In this document: in pieces, positions 1 through 64,000 of the stretch
How positions within the stretch are numbered: the first letter of the stretch is position 1
Layout of the letters: each line of letters opens with the position of its first letter
The notes under the pieces: generated by a model
Databases searched by the model: none
What the model saw: the letters and a program-made list of their open reading frames with translations, nothing else
What the model was told of the DNA's origin: nothing
NCBI GenBank assembly: GCA_053919585.1
Contig: CM132788.1
Strand: one strand, 5' to 3'
Length of the DNA stretch: 64,000 nucleotides
Source of the DNA: Euprymna scolopes
Taxonomy: Eukaryota
Program-made: the position numbers and the translations under genes

Positions 1-722
1 TCGACTGAAAATGCAAATTAAGCTGGAGAAGGTAAAACTCACTCCGGCAAATTTCAACGACAGGTTGGTGAAAGTTTCGCGACTGTAGATTGAATGGAGC
101 AAATCTTGAGTTCTTTTTATGAGTTTGCTTAGGTTTCAAGGATTTTGGGTGACCTGAACAAACAGACATGCATCGGACCACCTAGAATAGGCTAGTTAGG
201 CAGTTTTGTTCGATTTTTAACTTAGCTAAAGTTATGCACGTTATCATCGTTCCATACCCCTTTTAGTTTGCCCCGGTCCCATCACCCGTTTTTTTTTTCT
301 CCCACCTCTTTTGGTTAAATACCCCCCACTCCCGGCCCCATTAGGTAACGGATAGACTTTTGTCAGTTATGTAGGCCATTTTTGTGGCGTTTTCAATAAA
401 GTTTTTGAGGGACCTACATCTTTTCGACTGACAAAACTTTCGGCCTGCAACAATTAGTAGTGAGGGGGGTTCCTTTACCAAACCACTTTTTCATCTGTAA
501 AGCTCGTTCGTTATTGTAAAGATTTATCCCCAACCCCCCACATCATGTATATATATATTTGTAATTTTCGGTTTTAAATAGGATGTCCTGAGTGATTCTG
601 ATATTTTGGTGAAAGTCTAGTTAACGTTATGTTAGATAGGTCAACATTAACCCCCACTCTCCTTTTTCGGCCTTGTGCCACATTTTTATAGTGAATTTTT
701 ATTTTTTGCAAAATAAAAATAT
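1..722 (+). mobile_element. 3' end (ORF2 C-terminus and 3' UTR) of Tx1/L1-clade family A, truncated by the window start
   Basis: Colinear with the reverse complement of 48904-49650: translates RLKMQIKLEKVKLTPANFNDRLVKVSRL, shares UTR blocks, and ends TTCGGCCTTGTGCCACATTTTT...AATAAA. Confidence 0.9.
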
Positions 723-1039
723 TTACCCCCATTAGGAGTCAAACATTTTACAAACTTTTTTTTTTTTTTTTTTTTTTTTTTAAACAAAGTTACTTAATTG
801 CTTTTATTCTTAAAACAAGGTTATTTTTTGTTTTTAAAATGTGTTCCATGTGAAGCCCCTACTCAACAACACAAAATTGTTTTTTTCTTTTTAAAGTTTA
901 AAGTTAAAGACTTACTGCATCTTTCAAATAGATGTGCTTCATGGGAATCTTCTCTAATAATTTAAAATGCTAAGAAATGAAAATTTCATTTTCTTTGAAA
1001 TCCTTTCATTTTTTATATTTTAAATATTGGAAAGCATAC

Positions 1040-11609: not shown

Positions 11610-14600
11610 ATTGGAAGCGATTCAAAAGAAATGTTTAATCTTATTCGTTGTGGGCCGCCAGACAAAGTTACAAGAGCATCTATTGAAATTAACAATTTAC
11701 TGGTAACAGGATATCTGCAAGGAATTATAAAATGTAAAGGCTACAACACTTGGAACGCCTTGTTCAATACAATTAGAAACTCTGCAATATCTTAAAGTGA
11801 TGACTAACTACACCCTACAATCTGAATACATGGGAAAAAGGAGACCCACTATTTTGGCGTTTCAATTTCCGGACCACAGAGATCAGTACATTTCTCTTAA
11901 AATTGGAAAGATTGTTCCCATTCAACATAAATTGCATGAAATAGTCATTCGACATCATTCTAAACAAAGAAAACTCCAAAAATTCCATTCTTACTTGAAG
12001 TGGGGAAAGAACAATTTCCAATAATTGTAGTAGGCAGCCAGCCAACCTTCTGGTCTTATGGTGAGATTGGCTATCTCACTTCGGATTGGCCCCAGTGAAC
12101 CCAAAAATTGAGAGTATGGCAACATTTGGGGATACAGCCGATAGTAAAGGAACTCCGCAAGAAACTAAGGATGAGACCAAAGAGAACCCTGGTAAATTGT
12201 TCATGGAAAAAATAAAAACCCTGGCCGCCTGAGCTTTGAACAAATGCAGGAGGAGGCCATGTTAGAAAAGGACCCTGGCAGAGCTAAAAAAAAAAAAAAA
12301 AAAATGCACAAAAGATCAATCACCCCAATCCCTTTCCTAAACAAAGCCCAAAATTGCACCATAACTGAACCTCAGCAGTCGGACAAAATCAATAGCAAAA
12401 GCCATTCCTCCTCCCCCAGAAACAGCCTAAACTGATTCCTCTTAGCCCCATTAAACTAAATCTCGCTCTTCCCCTGTCCCTTCTACTTCTGCCACCCCCA
12501 TAATACTCCTGCATCCCTCACAAAGTCCCTACATGCACCACACCCCTATAGACACTGAAAACCCAGCAACCCCTAAGAACCCCTGGAAAAAAAAAACTAC
12601 CTCGACAAGGAAATCTGTAACAGTTGCACTCAAAATGAGCAACTATTTTAAATAGGTAGACCTTTCTAAGCTCATTGAATTCAGGGAAGTTGCTAGAAAG
12701 CCAATCGTGGACCCCAGCAATTTCCTGAAAGCTAAAAGAATAAGTTATTAAGAAAAAAGGAGGCAAAAGACTTACGGACTATGTTAGAAGCAAACAAAGC
12801 ATTTGAACTTTCACTTTTGGCTATTTTTAGAGAGTCAGACATCTGTAATTTATAAAAATCTTGTGTTGGGTGGGTCCCGGTAAAATGCATCCTTCCCTGT
12901 AAAGGATAGCCATATTAACATCTGTATGTTGGCAGTATCTCATGATGGGCTCACTGACTCAGATGGGTACCTATTTAGTCACGAGTCGTCAGCACATTAA
13001 CGACTGCAATGTTCGTTTTTGGTTCCCAACCCTAAGTCACCATACTGGATCTCAAGCTTACTTTAGGGCTAACTTGTGAAAATTTCGCTCAAGCTTGGAT
13101 CTACAGCACCTCTGAGTAAATATCTGTTGCTCACAAGAAACCCATCATTTCAGGTGACCATTTGGATGCCCTGTTTACGACATTGCACTTATTCAGCATA
13201 CTTGAATTCTCATTTGAGAAGTTTCTTGGCTAGTTAATTACTGGATGGATGTACTGTGTGACCACAAATTAAGGCATTCGTGAACCGTTTGTCATTTTCA
13301 GGAGTTTTTTTCCATGGAACCCAGTCTGTCATTAGAACAGTTCAACACCTACTTGGCTGACTTTTCATCTTTCGGTTACTGAAGCAGCTAGGTGCAAAAG
13401 GTAATATAGCAGAGGATGATGTCATTAAAGCCTTAAAGCAGATCGGCCTAAAGATTGATGGTCTGATCTATGAAATGTATTCGGTTGTTGCGCATCTTTG
13501 TTACCTTGTTAGTTTTAACTATTGGTTTTGGAACAGCTCAATCGCAATATTATATCATGGGCATTGTGAAGCTGTGCAAAAGCAAAGATAGTGGAGGTTA
13601 AATGTGATGAGAATTACTGGCTCTTAATGCTTAATGCTGTGTTAGATTTTGGCCAAGATTGCTTGTGCTAGGTAGTCTAAGCCCCGAGCAAACTTTTGGC
13701 TTGTAATTGCGCTTGTGGGTTCACTTCCTTAATGCAAACCCCACACTGATGAGGGAAGTAAATGACAAAGGATAGAGGCTATTCTGCTTATCTCAATCTA
13801 TTTTTCAAAGTTGTGCTTTGTCACAGATGCACTATATGCTTGTGTTTGAACATTTCCTTCGCAGACCAAGGGTGAATCTGGTCCTTTGTGATATCACTTT
13901 GCCAGACACTTCCTCCCTGGTAAAGTACTCCGCCTCTGCCGACAATGTAATGTGCAATGCTGAGATTAGTGTGATTAACATAGAAATCAGATTATATGAA
14001 GTGGTCACAGGCTAACATTAACTGTGACAAGGTGCCTGGACAGAAGTTTCCCATTCAGCTGGAGCGACAGGCTTTGCAAGATTCTCTGCATCTGGTTTGG
14101 TCCCCATCTTCAGCTGGAAAAATATTAGGGTTTTGAAAGTTGTTTGGTCCACAGCTAGTCTAGATTAGCAGGGAGAGTGGAGGTGTGCATACTGCACATC
14201 TATCCAATGTTTCCCTTTTTCTTAGATACATTGCTGTATTTGCAGCAGGCTCTTTTCCAGTTCTTGGGGTTGGAAAGGCCCCTATGGTCTGTCACTTATC
14301 CATCCTTCTGAAGGCGATCTGGGTATGCCAAATATGAAAATTCGTCTGCTCACACTTGATTGTCAGAGATGCAGGTTCCCTTTTGAAATTTTCATAATGT
14401 TTGTAATAAAGCGTTCAGGCCCACATTTTCGACTGGCAAATTAGATTATCTGCCACAGTTTAGTAATGGGGATGGGATCTTTTTACTAACATTTTAAATA
14501 ACATTGTGCATAAACCCCCCCCCCATTGCATATTTTCATATGGGGCTTAAGGTTATGTTTTTATGGTGACCGATGAAGGATTTATACGCTGATGGATGTA

Positions 14601-14740
14601 TAGTACGGATGCGGTATTGTGGTTATAGAGTGAAAGTAGGAACTAGCCAGCTTAGCTTAGTTAGCATTAGTTTGTCATGACCGTCCTCATTTTTGGTTTT
14701 GCACAATTTCTTAAATTTTGTATTTTTACGAAAATACATA
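11610..14740 (+). mobile_element. Decayed, internally deleted Tx1 family B copy (ORF1 remnant, ORF2 fragments, 3' UTR)
   Basis: KCKGYNTW, SEYMGKRR, QMQEEAMLEKDPG, ORF1 end GSQP* (~13035), VKYSASAD, HPSEGDLGMP. 14360-14740 matches the reverse complement of the B 3' UTR (54692-55140). Confidence 0.9.
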
Positions 14741-15814
14741 TTACCCCATTAATTATCAAAAAGTATTTCAACTTCAAATCTGAAGTTTATATAGCTCTAC
14801 ATGCAACGAGTCCTCTGGCTAGATGTTGGTTGGGACAGGTGAAGGATATCACTGGCAATCTAGCTGGATATTTGTTCTGTAGCAGTTGATAGGCGATTGT
14901 CATACACGAATGTGAACAATTGAGTGGTCCAGGTCTTCCATCACTGACAAAAGCAGCCCTACTTAGGGACAGCATTGCATTTCAAGTTGAGATGATAATT
15001 GGAGTCCAAAATTTTGCTTAATCACGATCTTCCCTTGGGAGAAAAGTGCTGGATAGCCAGTATTGTAGTCAAATCAACTGAAAAATTTTAATTTAATTTT
15101 GGAGCTTAGGTTTGTATCCTCCAAAATAATTGGACACTTGAATGCGAAACATCCATAGGTTTGCATGAACTTGACTAAAACACACATGCAGTAGTTTGGT
15201 TGGTATTAATATCTTGTGCATTCATAAAGTTCAGGTGTTTGTAGCACTTACAGTGAGACTAAAATACTTCAGCACTGAAGCAAACTTGCTTTTTAATATG
15301 GTTAGTAATTAACAAGGAAGTTTAATTTGCATAGTGCTTTGCAAAATAAACTCCCATTAGCTATTTATTTTTACTATTAACCAGTATTATTTATGCATAT
15401 TTTCAACATTGATATTTAGCAAAACGGTCCATCCAGTGCGACAAGGGGGGGGGGCACAGAAATTTTGGCTCAAGTTTTCCTGGGCAATACCTAGAAATAG
15501 GTCCTACTAGTTTTAAATGAAATGCATGAGCAAACTTCCAGATAAAAAAGAAAATTGTTACAAAACCTTCGATTGTTTAACTTTCTATTCTGCCATATTA
15601 GATTTTGTGTTAGGATTTTAAAGAATTCAAAATCCAATCAATTTAAGTTTTCACTGATAAAGTTCGACTTTGTCCCAGTTGATTGAGTAACAAAAAAAAA
15701 CAAACAAAAAAAAAAACTTAATATTTCATCAATTCGACAGATTGCACCGTTGTGACCTTTTCTGTTTAGTTTTCAGTTCTTGACGGTTCACCCAAAGCCT
15801 CGTTTCCTCACTTT

Positions 15815-47830: not shown

Positions 47831-48887
47831 TTCCTATGCTTTTGCAAAAGCAAAAACATTTTTCCTGTAAAACAACCAAACACCATTATTTAAGTAACTA
47901 TATTACTGAACTGAGCCTTCAATAACTCGAAGGGTTGATATGCCATAAAACTATAAACCGTTAAATTCTTCTTGCAGAACTAAAATAAGTTTTTCTATTT
48001 TAAGAGTAATGGTACTTTGTCTAATTTGTCGGCATAAAAGATTTCAAACTTGAATCGGTTGCTTTCTATAAATATTTGGAAACGTTAAGAACTGCTATTC
48101 ATTGAGTCAATACAGTTAGTGAGAAAACGCATAGCTGATAGATTTATTCAGTTAATTACAAATTACTTGTAATGAGAAATGAATTTATTTTCAAACATAA
48201 CTCAATCCCAGAACTGAAGTATTTTAACGTTTTTAATATATATATATATTGGTTAAACGACTTGAAGTAAACATGAAATTTTCCTTTATAACAGTTAAAT
48301 CTCTACCCGCCATTGCTCTGAACATTGATTGCTTCGTTTATTGGTGTTACATAGCATGGATAGCAAAATGCATTGCTCTGATACTGTCTTTTGTTCGTGT
48401 CTTGTAAAACAAGGGGTTCATATTTAGTGTATAACTGTTATTGTATAAAGCATGTACATGAATTGGCACAATCTTATCACACCACACTATTTTTACTGTT
48501 CATAGATTTTTCGATAAACTGGGTTAGTCAATTTTTCAATTTTTTTTTTTTTTTTTATGCAAACTAATTTCCAGGCTCCATTTTGAAATGTTAAGGTCTG
48601 ATTGTTAAACGTCAATATTGTTCAACTACGGCTTTCACTTGGTCACTGTCGATCATGTTGAGCCGGCCAGGATGAACATATCTCCCTGAGAACTTATTGG
48701 AATTGAGCAAACGATTCTAGGCACATGAAACAAAAATGTAGTAGGCAAAAAAATAATAAATGTTCTGTCAGCAACAGTACAACTTCAAAATAGTCAATAT
48801 CGCCCACCTCCAGAAGAGAGGGAATTCCTGTCCGTGATAACCGTGGTAAAAGAAGACACACTCCAATCGCCAGAAACACCCACACAC

Positions 48888-48903
48888 ACAATTTGAAGGA
48901 CAC
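48888..48903 (-). other. 16-bp target motif / TSD, copy 3 (GTGTCCTTCAAATTGT)
   Basis: Immediately follows the 3' end of element A; 15/16 identical to 54676-54691 and 61837-61852. Confidence 0.85.
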
Positions 48904-49529
48904 GAAATTTATTTTATTTAGCAAAAAATTTTTACAAAATAAAAATGTGGCACAAGGCCGAAAAAGGGGGATGGAGGTTAATGTTGACCTAACTAACATA
49001 ACGTTAACTTAACTAGACTTTTTCACCAAAATACCAGAATCACTCTGTGGACATCCTACTTTAACCCCGCAAGTTACAAATATATATACATGATGTGAGG
49101 GGTTGGGGATAAAAATCTTATTTACAAAATCGGATGAAAAAATATACAATGATAAAAAGTGGTTAGTAAAAAGAACCCCCTCACTACTAATTGTGGCGGA
49201 TAAAAAGTTTTGTGAGTCGAAAAGATGTAGGTCCCACGAAAACTAACTTTATTCAAACACAACAAAAATGGCCTACATCGCTGGCAAAACAGTTTATCCG
49301 TCACCTAAAGGGCTGGGATTGGGGATTATCGAACCAAAAGCGGGGGGAAAAAAAAACAAAAAAACGGACGCTGGGACAGGGAAAACCAAAAAAGGGATTG
49401 GGACGATGACAACACGCATACTCTAGCTAAGTTAAAAATCAAACAAAAATGCCTAACTAGCCTACTCTAGGAGGTCCGATGCATGTCTGTTTGATCAGGT
49501 CACCCAAAATCCTTAAAAAAACCTAAGCA

Positions 49530-52500
49530 ACTCAAAAAAGAAATTCAAGACCAGCTCCATTCACTTTACACAGTCGCGAAATTTTCACCCATCTGTCGTT
49601 GAAATTCACAGGAGCGAGTTTCACCTTCTCCAGCTTAATTCGCATTTTCAATCGATATTTGAAAATGAGGACAAACTGGGGAGCAGTGAAGGTCTCATCT
49701 CCGTAAACCTCCTTCTGTCACGTCGTCCAAATCACGCCTCTCATAACTGCTAGTAAACACAGAAAAACATAGCATTCTTCTTTCTTCATGGTCGGCGCCC
49801 AGTTGCAGCACGAGGAAACCGACTCCAGCACAAAAAAACGCTCGCTCAGCATGCGAACCGTGAAGCCTTCAACTAACTCACACAACGGTCGAACGATGGC
49901 GCAGTGGAAGAAAGCATGATCAAGGTCTTCCTCCCATTCTCCGCATCAGACACAATTGGGTGTCTCCGTAAGACCCGCTGCGTAAAGTCTTTTGCCGACC
50001 CAGAGGGCATTTCGTATTACCAGCCAGGTGAGTGATGCCTTGCAATTATCGAAGCAGCTCGACCCAGGCGCCCAAAGCCATATTAAGCGGCGCTCCTCCT
50101 TCGTAAAACTGAACTCCTCAATCTTTTCGTCTCGAACAGATCCCCTCACTAAGACCCGATATAGCGCCTTGCAAGACAACAGCTGGGTGTCAGAGAGGCT
50201 TTCTTTGACCCGTAGAAGAAATCTCTCGGGAGTGGAAGTACTGATAGATGGTAAAGGATCAGGGGGTAGATATGAGAATTGCATACCTCCGCCCGGCCCT
50301 TCAAAGACAGATTTCTCAAGGCCCACAAATGAGATGCGACCTTGACCGCTTCCAATACCTCCGACCAATTTTTCTCCAGCTGGAGACCAGGGCCAAACCA
50401 GACGCCGAGTAGCTTGCATGGCCCATCAGTCCAACCAAAGGGTCCCTGAAGGGGCATACCCCTCCAGGCACCGATACGTAAGCCAATAGACTTAACGTAG
50501 TTAATTATGGCCCCTGTGACCTTCGCATACCGACTTGTTTCTATGTCAACGACTCTAATCTCGGCACTGCTCGTTACAAGCACAGTCACGTCATCAGCAT
50601 AGGCGGTATACTTTACCGGGGTAGAGCCACCTGGCAAAGTAATCCCGCAAAGGACCGGATTCACCCGAACCTGGCGCAAATATGGCTCAAGCGCCAGCAC
50701 ATAACATTGGGGATAACGGACAACCTTGACGGATCGATCTTGTTAACATGAAGGGTTTCGACCTCACCCCATTCACTTCTACCATAGCACCGGGGTTGGC
50801 ATACAAGAGGCAAATCCAAGAGCGAAACTGGGGACCAAACCCAGCCGAGCGAAGAACAGCCTCTAGGTAACGATGGTCTACTCTGTCGAATGCTTTGGAC
50901 TGATCTAAATTGATCAGCGCGGCTTCTGTCGACTTTTTCTACGATCAAGCGTATCGTGTGCAAATTGTCTTGAATCGTCCAGCCCTTAACAGAACAAGTC
51001 TGTTCGGGACTTATTAGACGGTGTAAGACAACCTGCAGACGATTTGCTAAGATCTTGGCCAAAATCTTTAACTCTGTGTTTAACATCGTTAAGGGCTGGA
51101 AATTACCTATCCCATCCCCTCCATTTTTATCTTTGCGTAACAATTTAATGATCCCCCTGGTAAAGTACTGAGGTATGCACCCGTTCCTAAACCAGGAGTT
51201 AAAAAGTATGGTCAGCAAAGGGATAAAAATGGGCGACAGCCTCAAATACACCTTGTAGCGCAGACCATCTATCCCAGGGGTCTTGTCTAGCCCGACCTGT
51301 TTCAAGGCCTCAATGACTTCTTCCTCTTTTATGCCACCTTCACATCTAGCTGCTTCAGTCGCCTCCAGGCGAGGAAAGTCAGCTAAATAGGTGTCAAACT
51401 GTTCAATAGTCAGACCGGGCACCTTGGTAAAAAGTTCCTGAAAATGAGTCCGAAAACCCTCCAAGATTCCGTCGTTTGAAGTTACGGTTCGTCCATCCGG
51501 CAATGTGACACTAGCGATGTGTCGATCTGCAGAACGTCGAAACTCCTCCACACGCAGTGACGCAGCCATGTTTGTTGCCTCGTTTGGCGCTCTTTTTAAT
51601 CTAGCCCTAACTAATAATCCCTGGTCCTCCCTGTTATCCAAGGAGTCCAGTTCAGCCTTAACTACAGTATAGCTAGCACTATCCCCCTCCTCCACCGCCC
51701 TTTCTAATCTATCTTCTAGCGCCGCTTTCGCTTCTCTAGAACTACGGTTGAACCGGCGACTAAAATCAGCAGCGAAGGACCTAATGACTTTTAAGGTTGC
51801 CCCACCACTTATTCCCGATGATAGCCCCCGTCAATTCCCTCTGTATTGTTAGTAGAAGCTGTTCCCGGAAGTCCTTCACATCGAACAACGTGTTGAACTT
51901 CCAGTAACTAGTCATCCTAGGTTTAACACTATCTAAGTTTACTCGAACCCGGACAAGCCTGTGGTCCGAATAAACTATACTATGAAAACTTGGACAATCT
52001 AAAAGCCCTAAGTCGACTCTCCTAACTAAGAACCGATCGATGCAACTCGAAAGTTGCACCAGATCAGAGCCGCGTCTACCTGTCCAAGTCCATGCTAAAT
52101 CCCCGGGTTTTTCGTTCCGAAATATATCGACAAGATCAAACTTGTCGACAAAGTCTCGAAACGCTTTAGCATCCCGGTTCCGGTTAGTATCCCTTGTGGT
52201 ATTAACCCCGCGATCTAACTCAGGATCCAGGACCGCGTTCCAGTCTCCCGCTAAAACTAACCGAGACGAATTCATGAAAGGCTTGATTCGCCGAAAAAAG
52301 GAAACTAGCTCAGTACGGTTATTGGGCACATAAACCCCAATAAAACGAAATGCCACATCCTTTACGGTAACATCCAGAACGAGTAATCTTCCCCCTGGAT
52401 TTGCATAAATAGGGTCACATGATGCATCAAGAATGCGCTTAACTAGCCAGGTAACCCCCCTTGCGTGGGTATCATAATGTGCTGAGTAGAGCTGAAAGTC

Positions 52501-52659
52501 TCTAAGGAGCACGTCATGATAGTCACTTGGAATAAAGTGAGTCTCCTGTAGACAACATACATCCACACCAAGGCGTTGAAGGTCGCGTGCAACTCGAAGT
52601 TTACGAGAGGCGTCCCTCAACCCTCGGACATTTAAGCTAGCTAATCTTAAAGAAGCCAT
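49530..52659 (-). pseudogene. Family A ORF2 (APE endonuclease, reverse transcriptase, C-terminal Zn motif), frameshifted
   Basis: LASLNVRGL, CLQETH, GDWN, IDRF, YSDH; PGIDG, FQPLTMLN, YADD; C..CGE..EDLDHAFFHC. Split over ORFs 51781-52659, 50661-51695, 50149-50700 and 49946-50419. Confidence 0.95.
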
Positions 52660-52669
52660 CTTGAGCTAC

Positions 52670-54511
52670 TTAGGGTTGGGAATCCTGAACAAACATAGAC
52701 GGTGTCAAGATACTGACAGCAGTCCCCATAGACCCAGTGGTCATCTCAGTGGTGATGGACCCGTCTGGGGACAAACCGCCAATATCTAATGGAAATGTTA
52801 GTTTGAGGGCCCTATATAAAGATGGATGAACCTTTATGGGGACCCGCCCAACACATGCCTTTTTGATTTCAGTTAAATCTTTATCATTAAAAAAAGCAGC
52901 TGGAGGAAAAATGTTATATGCTGAATTTGCTTCCTCCAGCATATACCATAAGCCTATGGCTTCTTCCCGGTTTCTTACAACCGTAAGAAGCCTTCTTGCA
53001 GTTTTCTGGGTTCACTACAAGTTTTTTTTACTGTTTTAAATGCATAAAGTGCCCTATAGTCTTTTCTATTATGATTGTTCATGAGTTTCCTGTTCCGGGG
53101 TAATTTTGTAGACGTTCTTGCCTGTATAGTAGGGGAGCTTTTTTTTCCGGGATTCAGCTTCCGTAGAGGGACTTCGGGGCCTTTTTTCCCCCCCGGGGTC
53201 GCAGGAGGCAAGGGAGCAGGCGGGGGAGGAGGGGGAGGCATATCAGTTTTCATTGGGGAAAGGGGAGGGGTATTTTGAGGGGTGTTACAGGGGGTTTTAA
53301 AAGGGGATGGTTTGGGTGATTTTTTGGGGGGGGCAAGCGTTGTCATTTTTTTTTCTCTTTTTGGCAATGCTGTAGTGACAGGTGGGGGTAATGTCTTAGC
53401 TGGGGATGGACGTGTTTTTGTTGGAAGAGTCGGGAAAGAGTCGGAAAGGTTTGGTTTCTTTTTTTTTCGGTTTTGCGATCTTGGTCTAGTCGGTCTTTTA
53501 GTTTGCTTAAAACTTTAAATTTGTTGCCTCCTGGATCCTTTGAACACATTGCTTCTATTCTATCCTTCTCCAGGCTTTGTGCATAAGACTTTGGGGATGA
53601 AAGTTTTTTATTTTTCACCAATGTCCATTCTTGAGCTTTAGCTGGCGATTCCTTTGTTGTATTGCACAATTGCTCGAATTGGTCTAGTGAGAGTCTCTTG
53701 ATTGGACTTGCGTGAGTGCTTGTGACGGGAGGAGTATTGGTAGAGTCTTATGTGGCGTAACTGTACCCTATTTTGGTTGTCTGTTGCGGGCTTCGAATTG
53801 TTTGCGTTCTTTTGGGGCATGTGAAAGTGAGGTGCCCTACCTCTCCACATATCCAGCATGCTGGGCGGCGTCCGGCTACCACTAGTGGTAGTTTGTCTTC
53901 TCCTGCTTCAATATAAGGAATTTTACTGAAAGCTTCCTTATTCAGTAAAATTTCAAAAGTCCATGTTCCCTGGAAACTATCCAAATTAACACCTGTTATT
54001 TCTCCAAATTGGAGAAACGCACATAAATATTCACCAGGGACAGTCACTGGAACCTCAAAAACTGAAACTGTTGTTCTTCTTCTTCCCATGTATTCCATTC
54101 TTAATATGTGGTCTTTAGTAATAATTTCCTGTTTGGACATATTAATGCATTCCTCCTCGGTCTTGAATAGGGAATTCCAGGTGTTGTAGCCCTTACATTT
54201 CGTTATCCTTTCAGGTCTCAAGCCTGTTGTCGCGATTAGCTTTGCCACTTGTTCTTCTGTTGAACGAATTAACTTTGTCTTTCTGTCTACAACAAAGAGA
54301 AGGATAGTTTTTTGGTGATCTCTTCCAACTTTTGAAGATCCAGCTTGACACCTTTATCTGTGACAAATTCCGCACACAGCTTAGCTTTCTCAATGAAATC
54401 TTTCACGTCGATTTTTATGGCTGGAGGCTTTGTCCAACCCTGCTTTTCCATGTTATCATTGGGATTCATGTTTGGTAAAGTTTCCATCGGCGTCCCGGTG
54501 GCTGCCGCCAT
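52670..54511 (-). pseudogene. Family A ORF1 (nucleic-acid-binding protein), frameshifted
   Basis: Starts MAAATG; probable RRM-like region; CWICGEVGHLTFTC knuckle; Pro/Lys-rich linker; C-terminal block ending DSQP*; homologous to B ORF1. Confidence 0.9.
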
Positions 54512-54675
54512 CGCCGGTGGAAGCAGAAAGGAAAAATAACAGTCTTATAACAAGTAACGTAGGAGGAAGAGAAGAGAGAGGAATAACAAATTTAACAACA
54601 ATGTATAACAATAATAATAATAACAGCGCAATAAATATCGGATACGAACCACAAGAGTGATAATCAAAAGCGACC

Positions 54676-54691
54676 ACAATTTGCAGGACAC
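54676..54691 (-). other. 16-bp target motif / TSD, copy 2 (GTGTCCTGCAAATTGT)
   Basis: The only sequence separating the 3' end of B from the 5' UTR of A. Confidence 0.9.
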
Positions 54692-56398
54692 AGTATTTAT
54701 TTTCGGAAAATTTACAAAGTAAAAATCAGAAAAATTTGGCACAAGGCCGAAGATGGGGAAGGGGAAAGGACGGTCTTCTCAGACTAGTGCTAACTAATCT
54801 AACCTAACTAGTTCCTACTTTCACTCTACTTACACCATAATACCACATTCATACTATACATCCATCAGCGTATACATCCTTCATCAATTACCATAAGAAC
54901 ATCATGCCATGATAACCTAATTAAAACCCATAAGAAAGGGGGGTTTGGGAAGATAAAAATTTTATATACAAAATACAAATGAAGTATTTACAATGTTAGT
55001 AACACAAGACCCCCCCCCCCGTTGTTAAACTATGGCAGATGCACTGATTCGCCAGTCGAAAGGGTGATGCAGGTCCAAACACTTTATTTAAAGCACCTCT
55101 TACGAAAACTTCGAAAGGGAACCCGCATCTCTGGCGAATCAAGCGATCTGTCACCTAATTTGGGAGGGGAGTGGGGTTAGAAAAAAAAAAAAACTTAAAA
55201 GGGGCCTAATGATCGCTATCACACACTAGCTAGGTTATGAACAAAGAAGCCTAAATAATGGTCCTACTCTTGCCTATATCGTGACCTATTCTGGACTAAA
55301 AACGAGTCAGGGCTGACGTTCGTTCCTGTCACCCAAAATTCTTCTTCCTAAGGAACATCCAAGAACCAGTCAAGACTTGCTTCTCTCACCCGACACACAC
55401 GCGCAACTGACACCCACCTTTCAACAAAGTCTGACGGAGAGAGTCTAACTCTCTCGGCCTTGATACGATCCTTTAAATAATGACGGAAGAGTCGTATAAG
55501 GTCGAGGGGAGCGAAGTCCTCAGATCCATAGACCACTTTCATATGTGTGTTCCAGATAACACCTCTCATCACAGCTAGCAAGGTCAAACACAAATCTTTT
55601 CTGAGCCTATCCGTTGTCGGAGCCCAATTGCTACAGACATTAATAGGAACCAAGGTTAATGAGGATGTTTTTAGTATGCGGACCATGAGACCTGTAACAA
55701 ACTCAATCAGCGGCGCCACGATGCGACAAACGAAGGCGTGACAAAGTCTCGTCCTCATCGCCGCACCGTTTACAAATAGGCGAGTCCACCAAGCCAGCTG
55801 AGTGGAGTCTCTTACCGACCCAGAGAGCATCCCGAATTACCAGCCAGGTCAGGGAAGCCTCGTCGTTAGTGAGGCATCCTGACCCAAGGCCAGATTGAGC
55901 GGAGCTGCTCCTTCGCCAAAGGGAGCCTCTCACCGACGACATCCGTTACAGATCCCCTCACTAAAACCCGATATAATGCCTTTCGGGACAACAGCAGAGT
56001 GTTAGAGAGGCTTTCCTTCACTCTTAAGAGGGACTTCAGTGCGCGCCGGCACTCGCGGTAGAAGGGACATTCACCTCGGGGCAACCTGTGTGCCTCCCCC
56101 TCGGAGTAGTGCACCCCTCTCAAAGCCGGGAAGGCTTTCTTGGTGTCCTCCATCCAGAGGCAACCGTTTTCCCTATCTTGTGTGCACATTCGATCTAGAT
56201 AGAGCCGTAGCGTGTATAGCCGAATCTCCACTTTTGGCATACCTAGACCGCCTTCAGAAGGATGTAGGTAGCAGACATCGCGACAGACCTTAGGGGCCCT
56301 TCTAAGCCATAAGAAGTTGAAAAGAGCCCTCTGCAAATATAGCAGTATATCTGACGGGATTGGAAGCACTGATAGACGATAAATAGCGATTGGATATA

Positions 56399-58023
56399 CA
56401 GTGATGATCATATTTATTGGCACGGTAAAATAAAAGTTAAATTTTGTCTAATAAATTCTAAAAAAGGGATTAAATTAAAGAAAATAACAAAGTATATTAT
56501 GTATTTTTAACTGGCCTTTCCAATGCAGCAATCGGATTTTAGAAAAAATAAATAACAAAGGAACAACAAACATAATTGCAAAAAACCCTTGTTCAAAATT
56601 ATTGGCACGATTTATTTAATAATCAATTGTATAGCCTTTGGCCTTGATTACCTTCCTCAGTCGCTTTTCATAGTTTACAACCAAGTTGTTGCCCTCTTCA
56701 GTAGTAATTTTAGCCCACTCTTCCTGACAATAATCCTCCAATTGAATAAGATTCTTAGGCTTCCTTTGCATTACCCTCAATTTTAATGTTCTCCATAAAT
56801 TTTCAATTGGATTAAGGTCTGGGCTTTGTGATGGCCACTCCAAAACATTAATATGATTGTCCTCAAGCCATTTCTTAGTCAGTTTAGCCGAATGCTTTGG
56901 GTCATTATCTTGCATGAACCACCAACGACGACCAAGTGAGAGCTCTTTAGCAGAGTCTTTCAGGTTTTCATCCAATATTTTAACATAATCTTCCTTTTTT
57001 ATGCTACCTGTGACCTTAACAAGTCGCCCTGGTCCAGAGGCAGCAAAGGATCCCAAAAACATCAAACTGCCTCCACCATGCTTCACTGTGGGTATGGTGT
57101 TCTTAGGCAGGAAAGCTTCGCCAGATTTTCTGTAAATATAAGACACTTTATTATGGCCAAATAACTCTATTTTCGTTTCGTCAGTCCATAGAACACGTTT
57201 CCAGAATGCAACATCTTTATCAATATGACGTTTTGCAAAGGCTAGCCTTGCTTTCAGGTGCATAGGCTTCAATAAGGGAGTCTTTCTCGGACGACATGCT
57301 TTTAAACCAGCTCTCTTCAAAACTCTACCAACTGTATGTCAAGATACATTCACTCCAGAGGTGCTCTGTTCATCAACAATCTCCCCAACAGAGATCCTTG
57401 GGTTTTGTTTTACTTGTCGAACAATTTTCCGTTCATCTCTTGGAAAGAATTCTTTTTCTCCCTCTACCCTCTAAACTCATAACGTGGCCTTGCGATTTGA
57501 ACTTGTTTATTATGGCTCTAACAGTGGATTTGGGAAGGTTTAGCTTCTTTGAAATCTTATCATAGCCCTCCCCATTGGTATGGCATGCTATAACAAGCTT
57601 CCTGACGTCTTCGCTGTGTTCCTTAGTTTTAACCATGGCGATTGAAAATTATAATTTAGTCACTTATAATAGTTTAAATAAATCGCTATCTAAAAATTAT
57701 CTGAAAAATTATTCACTGAATTAGCGTTAAACAAGCATAATATGGCTATAAAAAAGTTCAGAAAGCACGTAAACCGGAAATTGATATTATACTGATACTA
57801 AAAGAAAAACAAAGCCGTGCCAATAATTTTGAACAAGGGTTTTTTGCAATTATGTTTGTTGTTCCTTTGTTATTTATTTTTTCTAAAATCCGATTGCTGC
57901 ATCGGAAAGGCCAGTTAAAAATACATAATATACTTTGTTATTTTCTTTAATTTAATCCCTTTTTTGGAATTTATTAGACAAAATTTAACTTATTTTACCG
58001 TGCCAATAATATGATCATCACTG
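56399..58023 (-). mobile_element. Tc1 DNA transposon (DD34E) with ~210-bp IR/DR-type TIRs and TA TSD
   Basis: TA|CAGTG...CACTG|TA; TIRs 56399-56609 and 57816-58023, each bounded by direct repeats of TTATTGGCACG. Confidence 0.97.
56616..57636 (-). pseudogene. Tc1 transposase with one frameshift (~57440) and one in-frame TGA (~57340)
   Basis: MVKTKEHSEDVRK HTH start, GRKR NLS-like segment, WTDETK, QDNDPKH, SPDLNPIENLW; 34 residues between the second D and E. Confidence 0.95.
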
Positions 58024-59887
58024 TATGTGGGTATTACACACCTCCGCTCTCCCCTTTAATGAAATGTTTCTACTGATCCACTGAAGCTGCAGACCGTACC
58101 ACTTTCAGAACCTCCGACCAATTTTTCTCCAGCTCGAGGTCAGGACCAAACCAGACGCCGAGTATCTTGCAAGGCCCATCGCTCCAACTGAAGGGGCATA
58201 CCCCTCCAGGCACCAATGCGCAAACCCGAAGACTTGTCGCAGTTAATTTTGGCCCCTGTTACCGTTTCATACAATCTGATTTCTACACCGACGACACTAA
58301 TCTCAGCACTGCTCGTTACAAGCACAGTTACGTCGTCGGCATAGGTGGAGTACTTCGCCTGGGCATCCGCACCTGGCAAAGTGATTCCGCGTAGAACCGG
58401 ATTCACCCTTAGCCTGCGCAAAAATGGTTCGATCGCAAGCACATATAGCATGGGTGATAACGGGCACCCCTTGACGAATGGACCGTGACAAACTGAAGGG
58501 TCTCGACCTCTTCCCATTTACTTCCACCATCACCGCGGGGTTAGCATAGAGAAGATGAACCCAAGAGCGAAATTGCGGCTTCGGTCGTCGAAAGACGAGA
58601 AAAGTCAGCCAAATAGGTGTCGAACTGTTCTAATGACAGACCGGGTTCCATGGAAAAAAGCTCCTGGAAATGGGATCTAAACGCCTCCAACACACCCTGG
58701 TTTGTGGTCACGGTACGCCCGTCCGGCAATGTGACACGAGCGATGTGCCTATCAGCCGCTTGCCTAAGCTCCTCTGCATGCAGTTCAGCGGCCATGTTTG
58801 TTGCTTCCTGGAGCATTCTTTTTAACCTAGCCCTAATCGCTAAGGCTTGGTGCTCCTTTTCAGCAAAGGAGGCAAGCCGAGCCCTAATTATATTAACGCT
58901 AGCACTATCCCCGTCCTCCACCGCCCGATCTAGTCTAGAGCCTAGTGTCACTTTAGCTGCCCTAGAATCTAGATTGAGTCTTTTGCTAAAGTCAGCAGCA
59001 AAGGACCTAATGGCTTCCTTAACTTTTACTCACCACTTATTCCCAATAATTGCCCCCGTCAATTCCCGCTGTAGGGTTAGTAATAGTCCGTCATGGAAGC
59101 CCTTCACATCGAACAACGACGTGTTGAGCTTCCAGTAACCGGCTAATCTAGGCTTAGGTCTATCTAAGTTTACCCGTACACGAACAAGTCTGTGATCCGA
59201 GTAAACTATATTGTGGAAACTTGGACAATCCAATACTCCTACATCGACTCACCTAACTAAGAACCGGTCGATATAGCTCAAGCGCTGTATCGAATCGGAG
59301 CCGCCTCTACCTGTCCAAGTCCACACTAAGTCACGGGGCTTTTCATTTCGGAACTTGTCGATAAGATCAAACTTATTCACGAAATAAAACGGCATCCCGA
59401 TCTCTGTTAGTTCCCCTAGATGTTAACCCAAATCGATCTAACTCGGGATCCAGGACGGCGTTCCAGTCTCTCGCTAAGATAACCATTCTAACATCTATGA
59501 ACTGCTCCATCCGCCGAAAAAAAACCAGCCAGCTCAGAATGGCTATTGGGCGCATAAACCCCAATAAGACGTAATGCCCTACCCTTTATGGTAACATCCA
59601 AAACACAGTCTTCCCTCCGGATCCAAGTAAGACGGGTCACACGACGCATCTAGAGACCTTTTAACTAGCCAGGAAACCCCTCTCGAGCGAGAATTATAGT
59701 GCGCTGAGTAAGCCTCAAAGGTCTTAGACAGTGCACCCAAATGGTCACCAGGAATAAGATGGGTTTCCTGCACACAACATATATCCACTCCGAGGTGCTG
59801 CAGGTCCAAACTCAAGCGCCATTTGCGCGAGTCGGCCCTTAGCCCTCGGACATTTAAACTAGCAAGCTTGAGATCCATGGTGGTGCC

Positions 59888-61641
59888 TTAGGGTTGGGAA
59901 CCAGGAACGAACATCGCGGTCGTGAGCATGCCGACGGCTCTCGTGAGGGAATAAGTACCCATCGCAGTATCGATGAGGCCGTCACGAGAGATACCACCGA
60001 CATGCAAAGGATAGGTTAGTTTTGCTATCCTATATAGGGAGGGGTGCATTTTTACCGGGATCCTCCCAACACAACATTTTTTAAGGTTTTTTATGTCGCT
60101 ATCTTTAAACACAAGGGGAGTGGGGAGGTTGAAGGCTTTATTTGCCTCTTCGAACATTAGCCAAAGATCCTTGGCCTCTTCTTTTTTCCGAACAACGGTT
60201 AAGATTCTTTTGGCATTTGGAAAATTAGCAGGGGTATCTACTAGTTTCCCCCCCCCACCTCCTTGAACTCAATTAGTTTTGTGAGGTCGGTTCCTTTAAA
60301 GTTCTTGTGGTTGTTAATAGCGGCTTGGTTTATTATGCAAATGTCTTTGCCAGGGAGGTAGAGAGTCTTTTTCTTGTGTTCAGGCGAGGGGGTGATGTCC
60401 ATTGCAGAATGTGTGTTTTTAGGAGATGCAAGGGGAGTGTTGTGAGTGGTCGCAGAGGTGGATGGAATGGGAGAGGAGGGTTTGTGTTTTTTTTGAAAGG
60501 CTTAAGGGTGTTAGTTTAGGCTGTTTATAAGGGACCGGAGTTGTAACTGGAGAAGGCATTTTGAGGGGGGAAGGAGTTATTGGCTTTGTAGGAGACTGGG
60601 TGATAGGGTTGGTTAGGGATTTGGGGCTTGGTTTCGGAGAAGTGGGTTTACATGGGGATTTGGGTGATGGGCGTTGAGCATCTAATTTCTTTTTTAATTT
60701 GACGACTTCGAGATATTTTTCTTTTCCGGGGTCATTTTGCAGCATTGCCTGTTCTTTCATTTGGTCCAGGCTCAGGCGTCCAGGGGTTTTTCTCCCAGGG
60801 GCGATTTGCCAGGGTTCTCCCCTGAGGATTTCGTCTGTTTCGTTGGTAGGCGGCTTGGGAACACTTTTTGATGAGGATCCCAAGTGTTGTCCAATGGATT
60901 TTTTGGTGTTTGGAGGAGGTTTTTTTAAGGGGCATTCTGACGTGAGGTGGCCAATTTCGCTGCAATTCCAGCATGTCGGTCTTCGGCCAGCCACTATTAT
61001 AGGGAGTTTCTCCTCTCCCGCCTCGGAAGAAAGGGATCGCATCGAAGTTTGCCTTATCGAGGAGGATGTCGTATGACCATATGCCATGAAACTCGTCCAC
61101 CTGCACCGAAACCATTTCGCCATATTTTAGAAGGAAGGCGCCGATGTGTTCTCCTTCAATGTGGTGAGATACATTAAAAACGGACACAGTAGTCCGACGT
61201 TTTCCCATATATTCTGATCTTAGAATATAGTTTTGAGTGATTATCTCTTTTTGTGAGATAGTTAGGCAGTCTTCTGGGGAGTTAAAAAGTACACTCCATG
61301 TGTTGTAGCCCTTGCACTTGACGATGCGCAAAGGTCTAAAACCAGCTGTAGCCAAAAGGTTGGTGATGATATCTGTGCTTGCTCTTATTACTTTTTTTAA
61401 CTTTCTGTCGACTATAAATATAGTCAGACACTTTTTTTTGGATTTCCTCCAACCTTGGCACGTTGACGATTAATCCTTTGTCGGTGACAAGTTCCAGGCA
61501 TTGTTTTGCCTTTTCAATAAATTCGTTGACGTTGATATCCACTTTCGGTGGTTTGGTCGAAGTGTTTGGCGTAGCAGTAGTGCCGTTTTCCGCTTCCAAG
61601 ATGTCGACGACAATGGGCGTTTGGCTCGCCGAAGCGGCCAT
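59888..61641 (-). pseudogene. Family B ORF1, frameshifted
   Basis: Starts MAASASQ; KCKGYNTW, SEYMGKRR, CWNCSEIGHLTSEC, SP/KP-rich linker, C-terminal block ending GSQP*. Confidence 0.9.
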
Positions 61642-61836
61642 AGCCGAACCATTAAAAAAAGACGTTTAAAAGAAAGTCCAAAAAAACAACTGTTAAAAAT
61701 AACAGTAAGACAAATGAAAGAAAAAAAAAGCGTCGTGTAGAGAAAAAAAATCCGACGGTAATAAAAATAAAAGGGTAAAAATCACTGATAGAATAACGCA
61801 CGAGACAAGAGTCAAAAGCAACTTGAAATCACAAAG

Positions 61837-61852
61837 ACAATTTGCAGGACAC
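61837..61852 (-). other. 16-bp target motif / TSD, copy 1 (GTGTCCTGCAAATTGT)
   Basis: Directly precedes the B 5' UTR and follows a predicted initiator (GGCA+1GT, A at 61853). Confidence 0.9.
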
Positions 61853-62040
61853 TGCCGACTCGTCTCTAGCCTCCTGCTTTAATAGTTGACGGGAATTATC
61901 CATTTGCATAATCACATGAGAAAGAAACGTGATTTTCCCAGAGTTGCATGGGGGTAAACGCTCATAAAAACCCCCGGACGCCATCTTGGAATTCTCTTTT
62001 CCCCCCAACCGGTGACACAACAGACGTACCCGAGGTAAGC
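61853..62040. promoter_or_regulatory. Putative divergent Pol II promoter module, copy 3 (points into the Tx1 tandem)
   Basis: Minus strand: ATGCAAAT (61909-61902), 17 nt, TATTAAAG (first T 61884), AGTCGGC, CAGT with A at 61853. Plus strand: CATAAAAA (61963), CGCCATCTTGG (61979), GAG|GTAAGC (62035). Confidence 0.6.
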
Positions 62041-62139
62041 TCTTTTTCCCCTCATTTTAGTTATTGCTACTTCTGCTACAACACACCTTCTAGAACGGCA
62101 TTCTCCTCATACTCGTGTCACATCTTTGGTTTTCTGTAG

Positions 62140-62175
<36 letters not shown>

Positions 62176-63579
62176 CAGTGCAAAAAAAAACGTATTGAAT
62201 GTCGGTAGTTCTCTTGATCTACCATTTCAAAAGCTTATATGCTCACAAATGTATGAACTTCTCTGCTGACGTCAACATACAAGATTTGCTGCAGGATTTG
62301 AAGAATAAGAATATAAAACTTTCATAAGGAAGCTGGAAAGACGAAATTTTTTTTAGATAATCCAATTTCTCTGGCAAAACTATTGAAATGGTACTACTTG
62401 GCCTTTTGGTTAGGAGCAAAGTGTAATATCTGTTCTGATACCACACTTCACCTTTTATGTCTGATTTCGGTGGAGAAAAAATCTTTCTAGATTGAGGCAA
62501 TTTTAATTTTTGTTCTTATCCAGAGTGCTTTTTTTTTTTTTTTTAGCTGGTTTTCCCCACATAAAAAAACAACCTTATGTCTAAACCCTCCTGAGGACTC
62601 CAGTAAATAGGAACAGTACTTAATCGTCCAATATCAACGTCCCTCCTTCCACTTCTCATCTTGAGAGGAGGAAGATGGAAGTGTCCCTAAAAACGTCTAC
62701 TTCATATATTAATTGGATCGTTTTCAAATTAAAAAAAATCAATATTTATCAGTTTCATTACATTTCTGACTTGATTTGGAGACACTTTTTAAGCCTGTAG
62801 ACAAACGGCAAAGAAAGTATATTTTAATCATAACATTCTTTAAGATTGGTCTTCAGTGATGCACTGCTCTCATTGCCGATGTTGGGTCTTACACCATATC
62901 AACCCCAACATGCTAGATCGCCTCCTTGAAAGCTATGTTATTTGGGTTGAAATTGCAAAAAATGTTCTGACAATCTTCAGCCTTTCTAACTTTAAGCAAT
63001 TCGCATACTACCTTTTTCCTAGACAATATCAAGTATCTAATAGATCATTGTAAAATGCGTCTACAATCTGCATAGGAGCCATTTTAAAGTAAGTGGCTGT
63101 ATCGTTCTCTCTCAAATAGCTATATATTTAATGGTCTTGCTATTGGAATATTGACTTCAGTCTGATCTGCATTAAATATATAGATTGTAAAGAATCATTT
63201 TATTACAAAACGAGTTCAAATTGAGGCTAGGTAATATTACGTTATTGCATATGAATTAGATGCATTCTCTTAACATGTGTGGCACCTTGTTCACTTTAAA
63301 AAAATTTCAACCTCTTAGGTCACAAAGTTCAATAAGATGTCTTAGTATGGGTACATTTTTTCTGCAAAACCACACGGATTTTTAGTTTTTAAAAAGGACC
63401 TTAGTTTTCAAAAAGCTTCATTTAACACTAAGAACTTTTCTATATGCTCATTTTTGCATATTTTTTTTTTTTTTATCAAAGCCATAGGCTACGGGCAAAC
63501 AGCATGGGCCATTATGAAATGGCCTTTCCCCCATTGATCAGCAGTAAACTGCTAGTCCTATTTTCTATCTCTCCAGGAT

Positions 63580-63921: not shown

Positions 63922-64000
63922 ATATACGGCATAATCATGTTGACACACCGGTTCCTGCTGGATCATCGAAGTTAAGCAACGTTGAACGTGGTCAGTACTA
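63922..64000 (+). mobile_element. 5S-derived SINE head (or 5S pseudogene), cut by the window end
   Basis: ATATACGGCATAATCATGTTGACACACCGGTTCC...GATCATCGAAGTTAAGCAACGTTGAACGTGGTCAGTACTA follows the 5S rRNA 5' two-thirds, with substitutions shared by the other copies. Confidence 0.75.

Follow-up and report, generated by a model that had tools for sequence, protein, structure and literature searches.

A LINE family of Euprymna scolopes has inserted, in sense orientation, immediately after the predicted transcription start of six hardly alignable promoter contexts, which belong to LTR retrotransposons or, in the case of the sixth context, to a putative one, and it apparently borrows their promoters. 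This was found by following up a predicted promoter within a 64,000-nt stretch of contig CM132788.1 (assembly GCA_053919585.1), hereafter referred to as the window, where two LINEs, B and A, lie in tandem on the minus strand. The promoter block upstream of LINE B, originally taken for that of a host transcript, is the U3 region of a solo LTR from a family with at least 1352 candidate copies in the genome.

The promoter block upstream of LINE B belongs to an LTR retrotransposon

Inspection of the minus strand showed ATGCAAAT at 61909-61902, followed by 17 nt, by the TATA-like box TATTAAAG at 61884-61877, and by GGCAGT, whose A at 61853 lies 31 nt after the first T of the box. Thus, the observation on which the original prediction rested was confirmed, as were its coordinates and spacings. 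The 16-mer that had been proposed as the target, which follows GGCAGT, occurs three times on the minus strand (61850-61835, 54689-54674 and 48901-48886, allowing up to 2 mismatches), whereas shuffled sequences gave an expectation of 0.05 matches and 0 of 100 shuffles reached 3. However, two corrections were necessary. Firstly, judged from the 3′ junctions and from uninterrupted copies, the duplicated unit is GTGTCCTGCAAATTGT (61852-61837, 54691-54676 and 48903-48888), which is shifted 2 nt upstream of the frame first proposed and starts one base after the predicted +1. Secondly, the TATTAAAG of the window is a mutated copy, as the family reads TATAAAAG.

To determine the nature of the flank, we searched the 5.9-Gb genome with it. 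The 226 bp upstream of LINE B are not unique DNA: the search returned at least 1352 first-look candidates on many contigs, and the whole 230-bp flank was 97% identical in all 40 copies that were scored. Most copies continue past the target into about 160 bp that the window holds 13 kb away, after LINE A. The uninterrupted unit is about 401 bp in length, starts with TGTAGC, ends with GTTTCA and is flanked by 5-bp duplications (AAAGC, CCTTT, CGTTC and AAGTT in other copies, all perfect; TGTGT/TGTGC in the window). Pairs of this unit lie 4.17 kb apart. One such element of 4573 bp (locus L031), bracketed by AAGTT, carries two 401-403 bp repeats, each 99% identical to the reference copy of this LTR, which enclose a gag with two zinc knuckles and a 1015-residue pol with protease, reverse transcriptase (RT), RNase H and integrase. 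A polypurine tract, AGGGGGGAG, lies directly before its 3′ LTR; the sequence after the 5′ LTR was read but was not matched to any tRNA. The window therefore holds a solo LTR of this family (62080..48726), here termed g1, which is interrupted by LINEs B and A and organized as follows, all features being on the minus strand:

62081..62085, upstream copy (TGTGT) of the 5-bp target duplication of the solo LTR; its downstream partner, TGTGC, is at 48725-48721.
61853..62080, U3 of the g1 solo LTR, from TGTAGCAG to the predicted +1 A at 61853, containing the octamer (61909-61902) and the TATA-like box (61884-61877).
61837..61852, first copy of the LINE target-site duplication (GTGTCCTGCAAATTGT), the first 16 nt after the predicted +1 of the LTR; it is present once in uninterrupted LTRs and three times in the window.
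61813..61836, fossil leader of LINE B, consisting of CT, then TTGTGATTTCAAGTTG (the tag of another LTR family, g2), then CTTTTG.
54693..61812, body of LINE B, from ACTCTTGT to GAAAATAAATAC; degenerate, with a zinc knuckle in ORF1 and a foreign block of about 1.6 kb at roughly 56396-58025; its 3′ terminus was defined from 136 genomic copies.
54676..54691, second copy of the target-site duplication, preceded by one extra T at 54692; the same AAATAC-T-GTGTCC junction occurs in the other g1-context copies.
48904..54675, LINE A, a second subfamily with broken ORFs, with an AP-type endonuclease at 51781-52659 and the start of the RT at 50661-51695.
48888..48903, third copy of the target-site duplication (GTGTCCTTCAAATTGT, one mismatch).
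48726..48887, the rest of R and U5 of the same solo LTR, ending with GTTTCA and 96.6% identical to LTR positions 228-401.

Other identities of the flank were considered and rejected. A small-RNA gene (an snRNA or a spliced-leader gene) was suspected at first, since an Rfam search of the window gave a weak U2 snRNA-like match at 62393-62575 (+; 26.7 bits, below the Rfam threshold) and a partial 5S rRNA match at 63922-64000 (+), cut by the window end, both just beyond the LTR; this was discarded once uninterrupted copies proved to be a 401-bp LTR. Similarly, the flank is not a promoter module of the LINE itself, because empty LTRs and complete gag-pol elements exist. A chance match in AT-rich DNA was also considered, as the G+C content of the window is 35-44% and the box in the window is imperfect. 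However, this is contradicted by the conservation of the block in the scored copies, by the family reading TATAAAAG, which is the only TATA-like box in the 401-bp LTR, and by the recurrence of the same layout of TATA-like box and tag in five further contexts (see below); we regard it as all but excluded.

Both LINEs have broken ORFs. In protein-domain searches, Exo_endo_phos was found at 51781-52659 and the start of RVT_1 at 50661-51695 in LINE A, and a relative on a contig of a related assembly (L063, from ENA ERZ26051807) has Exo_endo_phos, RVT_1 and zf-RVT; this L063 contig starts inside the LINE. Protein hits carried no clade names, the best named ones being from the cuttlefish Acanthosepion pharaonis, and hits in a protein atlas were annotated as hypothetical proteins. 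L1-Tx1 LINEs are reported in coleoid cephalopods (PMC8967140, PMC13282606), and an N-terminal AP-type endonuclease followed by an RT, together with target-specific insertion into a repeated sequence with target duplication, is in line with the Tx1 clade. The Tx1 label used here thus rests on architecture and behaviour only. The foreign block inside LINE B encodes, in an ORF at 56616-57320 (minus strand), a Tc1/mariner-type transposase fragment (DDE_3 plus HTH_Tnp_Tc3_2) and has no counterpart in the related LINE on L063.

The same spacing recurs in six promoter contexts

Next, we asked whether the position of LINE B is shared by other copies in the genome. A similarity search gave thirty loci with B-type 5′ ends, which fell into five upstream contexts (g1 to g5) plus one tandem case. 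Each context is a discrete repeat that starts with TGT and holds a TATA-like box, and the five upstream sequences are only 38-54% identical to one another. Empty copies of each repeat end exactly after a family-specific tag; same-strand pairs 4-6 kb apart occur for g2, g3 and g5, and an integrase domain lies upstream of g4. The distance from the first TATA base to the LINE core ACTCTTGT was 53 nt in g2, 51-54 in g3, 52 in g4, 49-50 in g5 and 72 in g1, the latter because of the extra tag. A pattern search that does not depend on similarity ranking found 28 B-type cores against 1 control match; all 28 lie behind such a box or in tandem, and a sixth context, g6, was added, for which LTR status is putative. 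In total, all 58 intact B-type 5′ ends examined were in sense behind a TATA-like box or in tandem behind another LINE, and none lay behind a single-copy (host gene) promoter.

Further, a pattern search on the LINE 3′ end found 136 copies against 1 control match. Of the 100 that were listed, counted by eye, 42 continue into one of the six tags, 42 have a longer 3′ tail (classes P, g7 and g8), so that their insertion contexts were not visible, and 16 are singletons. Although g7 and g8 looked like further targets at first, they always follow the LINE 3′ end and have no empty copies, and they are therefore longer 3′ tails. These junctions, together with the 5′ ends, fixed the left edge of the duplication: with the first TATA base counted as 1, it is at 33 in g1, g2, g3 and g4 and at 32 in g5 and g6. 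The duplications are 14-18 bp long, at one site per family. The bases at the nick differ between families (GGCA/GTGT, TGCT/TGTG, GCGA/CAGT, TTCA/CTTA and AAGG/CATT, with the slash marking the nick) without a consensus, whereas the right edge usually follows TTG or TG, which matches the LINE’s own 5′ end. Thus, the insertion position follows the distance from a core promoter element and not the local sequence.

We also examined the independence of these insertions. Ten near-identical copies in g2 LTRs on one contig (C46; loci L044-L053) share 1.3 kb of upstream flank, which includes a tandem repeat of about 60 bp, and were counted as segmental duplicates of a single insertion. After removal of this cluster, the 5′ loci have unrelated flanks, with 5 for g1, 6 for g2, 2 for g3 and 4 for g5. 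Four further copies, all those in g4, sit in 3′ LTRs, as does one of the two g3 copies, where promoter use is less obvious. The 5′ LTR of the g3 element whose 3′ LTR holds a LINE (L040) matches 13 nt beyond the tag into the LINE 5′ end (contig C8:72138044-72138252), which could be the remnant of a second insertion or of a deletion. The otherwise hardly alignable LTRs (g1-g6; loci L002, L044, L040, L054 and L058, and copies from the pattern search) share short motifs, namely TGT(A/G)G at the 5′ end, CTTACCT 20-50 nt in, an E-box-like CA(C/T)GTGAT and, in g1, g4 and g6, the octamer ATGCAAAT 17-22 nt before the TATA-like box.

Thirty-nine other A-type 3′ ends stop matching before the tag, so that LINE A of the window is an unusual insertion into the g1 LTR. 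The exact A-type core 14-mer is rare, and one extra A-type copy sits 46 nt behind a TATAAAAC.

Copies in g1 retain the tag of a previous LTR family

All five g1-context copies, including LINE B of the window, carry the g2 tag between the g1 tag and the LINE core (61834-19 in the window), preceded by CT. Uninterrupted g2 LTRs contain TTGTGATTTCAGTTTG directly after their TATA-plus-31 nt. The first retained base corresponds to position 31 after the g2 TATA, two bases upstream of the g2 duplication, which implies that the progenitor RNA began in the g2 LTR at the canonical distance; this is indirect sequence evidence, from predicted starts. The start of transcription at the U3/R border is predicted from the TATA spacing and from these fossil tags. 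In addition, the 3′ junction of g1 copies keeps one extra T, which matches the first base of the g2 tag. In a tree of 29 copies, which are 92-95% alike, g1 forms one clade (support 100/98) that sits among g2 copies and the context label changes at least six times, although the deeper branches are weakly supported. Two g6 copies carry a g3-like fossil tag. Head-to-tail arrays of at least three or four full-length LINEs at 6.1-kb spacing, separated only by the 18-bp tag CATTCTGAAGTTAGATTG, were found on two contigs (C20:77483456-77495736 and C41:37603636-37615907).

RNA data

Since a start of transcription near 61853 had been put forward as a test of promoter use, we examined RNA data, all from one mollusc species. 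Contigs from poly(A) RNA cover the LTR family at high depth, reading from the polypurine tract into U3 and from U3 through the uninterrupted target, which makes expression of the LTR family plausible, although DNA carry-over in these libraries cannot be excluded. However, in two contig sets the depth was zero across the tag-to-LINE junction (61796-61826), and no chimeric LTR-to-LINE contig or read was detected. The only raw run, of poly(A) RNA, gave 12 reads and no pile of read starts.

Interpretation of the insertion pattern

Taken together, the interpretation originally proposed, that the elements insert in sense at about +17 of a host transcript and that the front copy is transcribed from the host promoter with the target at its 5′ end, is partly supported. 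The target lies immediately after a canonical TATA-to-start spacing, the LINEs are in sense and their body joins about 17 nt into the predicted transcript, and the leader tags are indirect evidence that progenitor copies were transcribed from the upstream promoter. A host gene promoter, however, is not supported, and the target is a multicopy transposon sequence, as is typical of Tx1-like elements.

In the explanation that we favour, with moderate confidence, LINEs B and A are AP-endonuclease LINEs of the L1/Tx1 type that home to the first 14-18 bp of the transcribed region of the LTR. The first-strand (bottom-strand) nick would fall one to two bases after the predicted transcription start and the second 14-18 bp further on, giving a sense insertion flanked by a duplicated tag. 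The copy next to U3 would then be transcribed from the LTR promoter, so that its RNA would start with the tag and, as the LINE’s own AATAAA lies 4 nt before its 3′ end, would probably also end inside the downstream tag. These terminal tags, together with the endonuclease, would guide new copies into further LTRs of the same family and into regenerated targets, which would produce head-to-tail stacks, and occasionally a lineage would jump to another LTR family, again at the start site. The identity of the LTR, the duplication, the sense orientation, the fixed distance from TATA in six contexts, the fossil tags and the stacks were established by the analysis, whereas the actual use of the LTR promoter, RNA-guided homing and the reason why the nick sits at the start site are inferred.

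Other mechanisms were weighed against this view. The position at the start site might be incidental, the LINEs homing by endonuclease specificity and RNA-DNA homology only and using an internal promoter in their own 5′ UTR. This would be in line with the association of each sublineage with one LTR family, with the insertions in 3′ LTRs, with the absence of chimeric RNA in the data examined, and with Tx1-type elements that target other transposons without any promoter logic (PMC4494074). We consider it unlikely, since six contexts share the same 32-33 nt distance without a consensus at the nick, all insertions examined are in sense, and the g2 tag carried by g1 copies begins at the predicted g2 start, 2 nt upstream of the g2 duplication, suggesting that the progenitor RNA began in the LTR and not in the LINE. 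Priming of reverse transcription of LINE RNA by the minus-strand strong-stop DNA of the LTR element, whose 3′ end is the complement of +1, would mean that LINE-bearing LTRs are made during replication of the LTR element. It would explain a junction exactly at the first bases of the transcript in unrelated families without any consensus at the nick, and the g4 and g3 copies do sit in 3′ LTRs of full elements. However, this is very unlikely, as the arrays and the stack of two different subfamilies in the window fit repeated chromosomal insertion, many copies sit in solo or 5′ LTRs with unrelated flanks, and no second LINE-bearing LTR appeared beside the g4 copies among the top-scoring hits.

A further possibility, compatible with the favoured explanation and refining it, is that targeting is guided by the core promoter, the LINE machinery measuring about 31 bp from a TATA box, either from TATA-bound TBP or the Pol II pre-initiation complex or by reading the box itself, and nicking the template strand at +1. 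This would be a Pol II counterpart of Ty3 or Dictyostelium TRE5-A at Pol III genes. The fixed distance, within 1 nt, and the differing bases at the nick speak for it, while the lack of any single-copy promoter among the 58 intact 5′ ends, the family specificity of the sublineages and the insertions in 3′ LTRs speak against it, so that it remains doubtful. If true, this would be the first LINE that reads Pol II transcription start sites, with LTR retrotransposons as its preferred prey and a 5′ leader formed by a stack of tags recording each captured promoter. Selection of founders that landed behind a promoter could also contribute, but alone it does not explain a precision of 1 nt.

Relation to known systems

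Tx1-clade LINEs that target other transposons include Tx1L in the piggyBac element Tx1D, Tx1-Mar in Mariner-N4_AMi, and two crocodilian families, Tx1-8_Crp and Tx1-4_AMi, which are reported to prefer LTR retrotransposons (PMC4494074). They share with the present elements an AP-endonuclease LINE with a precise, family-specific target inside another multicopy transposon, target duplications and stacks, and that paper also raises the idea that transcription may depend on the flanking element. Its main text does not say where in the LTR retrotransposon those families insert; here, the site is the first 14-18 bp after the predicted start, always in sense and at the same distance from TATA in six contexts, with old leader tags retained. 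In the open-access literature searched, we found no description of a LINE tied to the start site of LTR promoters or of stacked leader tags.

SLACS, CZAR and CRE1 insert into trypanosomatid spliced-leader RNA genes, between nt 11 and 12 of the mini-exon (PMC5814959), and transcription is reported to start at +1 of the interrupted gene (PMC3447711). This is the same promoter-borrowing logic, and sense insertion within the first ~20 nt of a multicopy transcription unit, with the start predicted, was also found here; however, those elements have a restriction-like endonuclease of the CRE group and target a host RNA gene, whereas here the endonuclease is AP-type, the target is the LTR of another retrotransposon and there are several target families. 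R2 and R1 in rRNA genes likewise need no promoter of their own, being co-transcribed with a multicopy target, and read-through target sequence helps precise priming (PMC4494074), but those insertions lie deep inside a Pol I transcript, in a single conserved sequence. In Dictyostelium, TRE5-A integrates at a set distance from Pol III genes (PMC5391098). Yeast Ty3 does so as well. In these systems the position is also set by distance from a core promoter rather than by the local sequence, but they depend on the Pol III machinery and on demonstrated protein contacts, whereas here only a positional rule at TATA-type promoters of LTRs was seen and no host-gene promoters were hit. HeT-A, a LINE at Drosophila telomeres described as promoting in tandem, relies on a promoter supplied by the element upstream of it in a head-to-tail array; that promoter lies in the 3′ end of the same family, while here it is the U3 of an unrelated LTR element, touched only by the front copy of a stack.

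How LINEs without a strong internal promoter secure transcription, and how site-specific LINEs change targets, are old questions, and this young lineage gives a sequence-level record of both. If the favoured reading holds, the LINE would be a parasite of another retrotransposon’s promoter, and an insertion at +17 of a 5′ LTR should also shut that LTR element down. The system would be a tractable one for testing whether target-primed reverse transcription can be steered by a promoter complex rather than by DNA sequence. Repeat annotation of large cephalopod genomes would also need care, because LTR-LINE-LTR chimeras of this kind will confuse automatic classifiers.

Other LINE 3′ ends

Two older LINE 3′ ends in the window, at 447-727 (+) and 14555-14756 (+), are followed by (A)TTACCCC(C)ATTA. 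The same motif, followed by about 6 variable nt, then CCAAAATATTGCAACA, then unique flanks, follows 24 of the 100 sampled LINE 3′ ends genome-wide, and it looks like a longer 3′ tail of another subfamily and not a variant of the 16-bp target. On L063 (8815-9215), a short element downstream of a LINE ends with the same tail as the LINE (GGCCTTGTGCCAAA...ATCTACCCCTCAAAATC) and is possibly a SINE mobilised by this LINE group.
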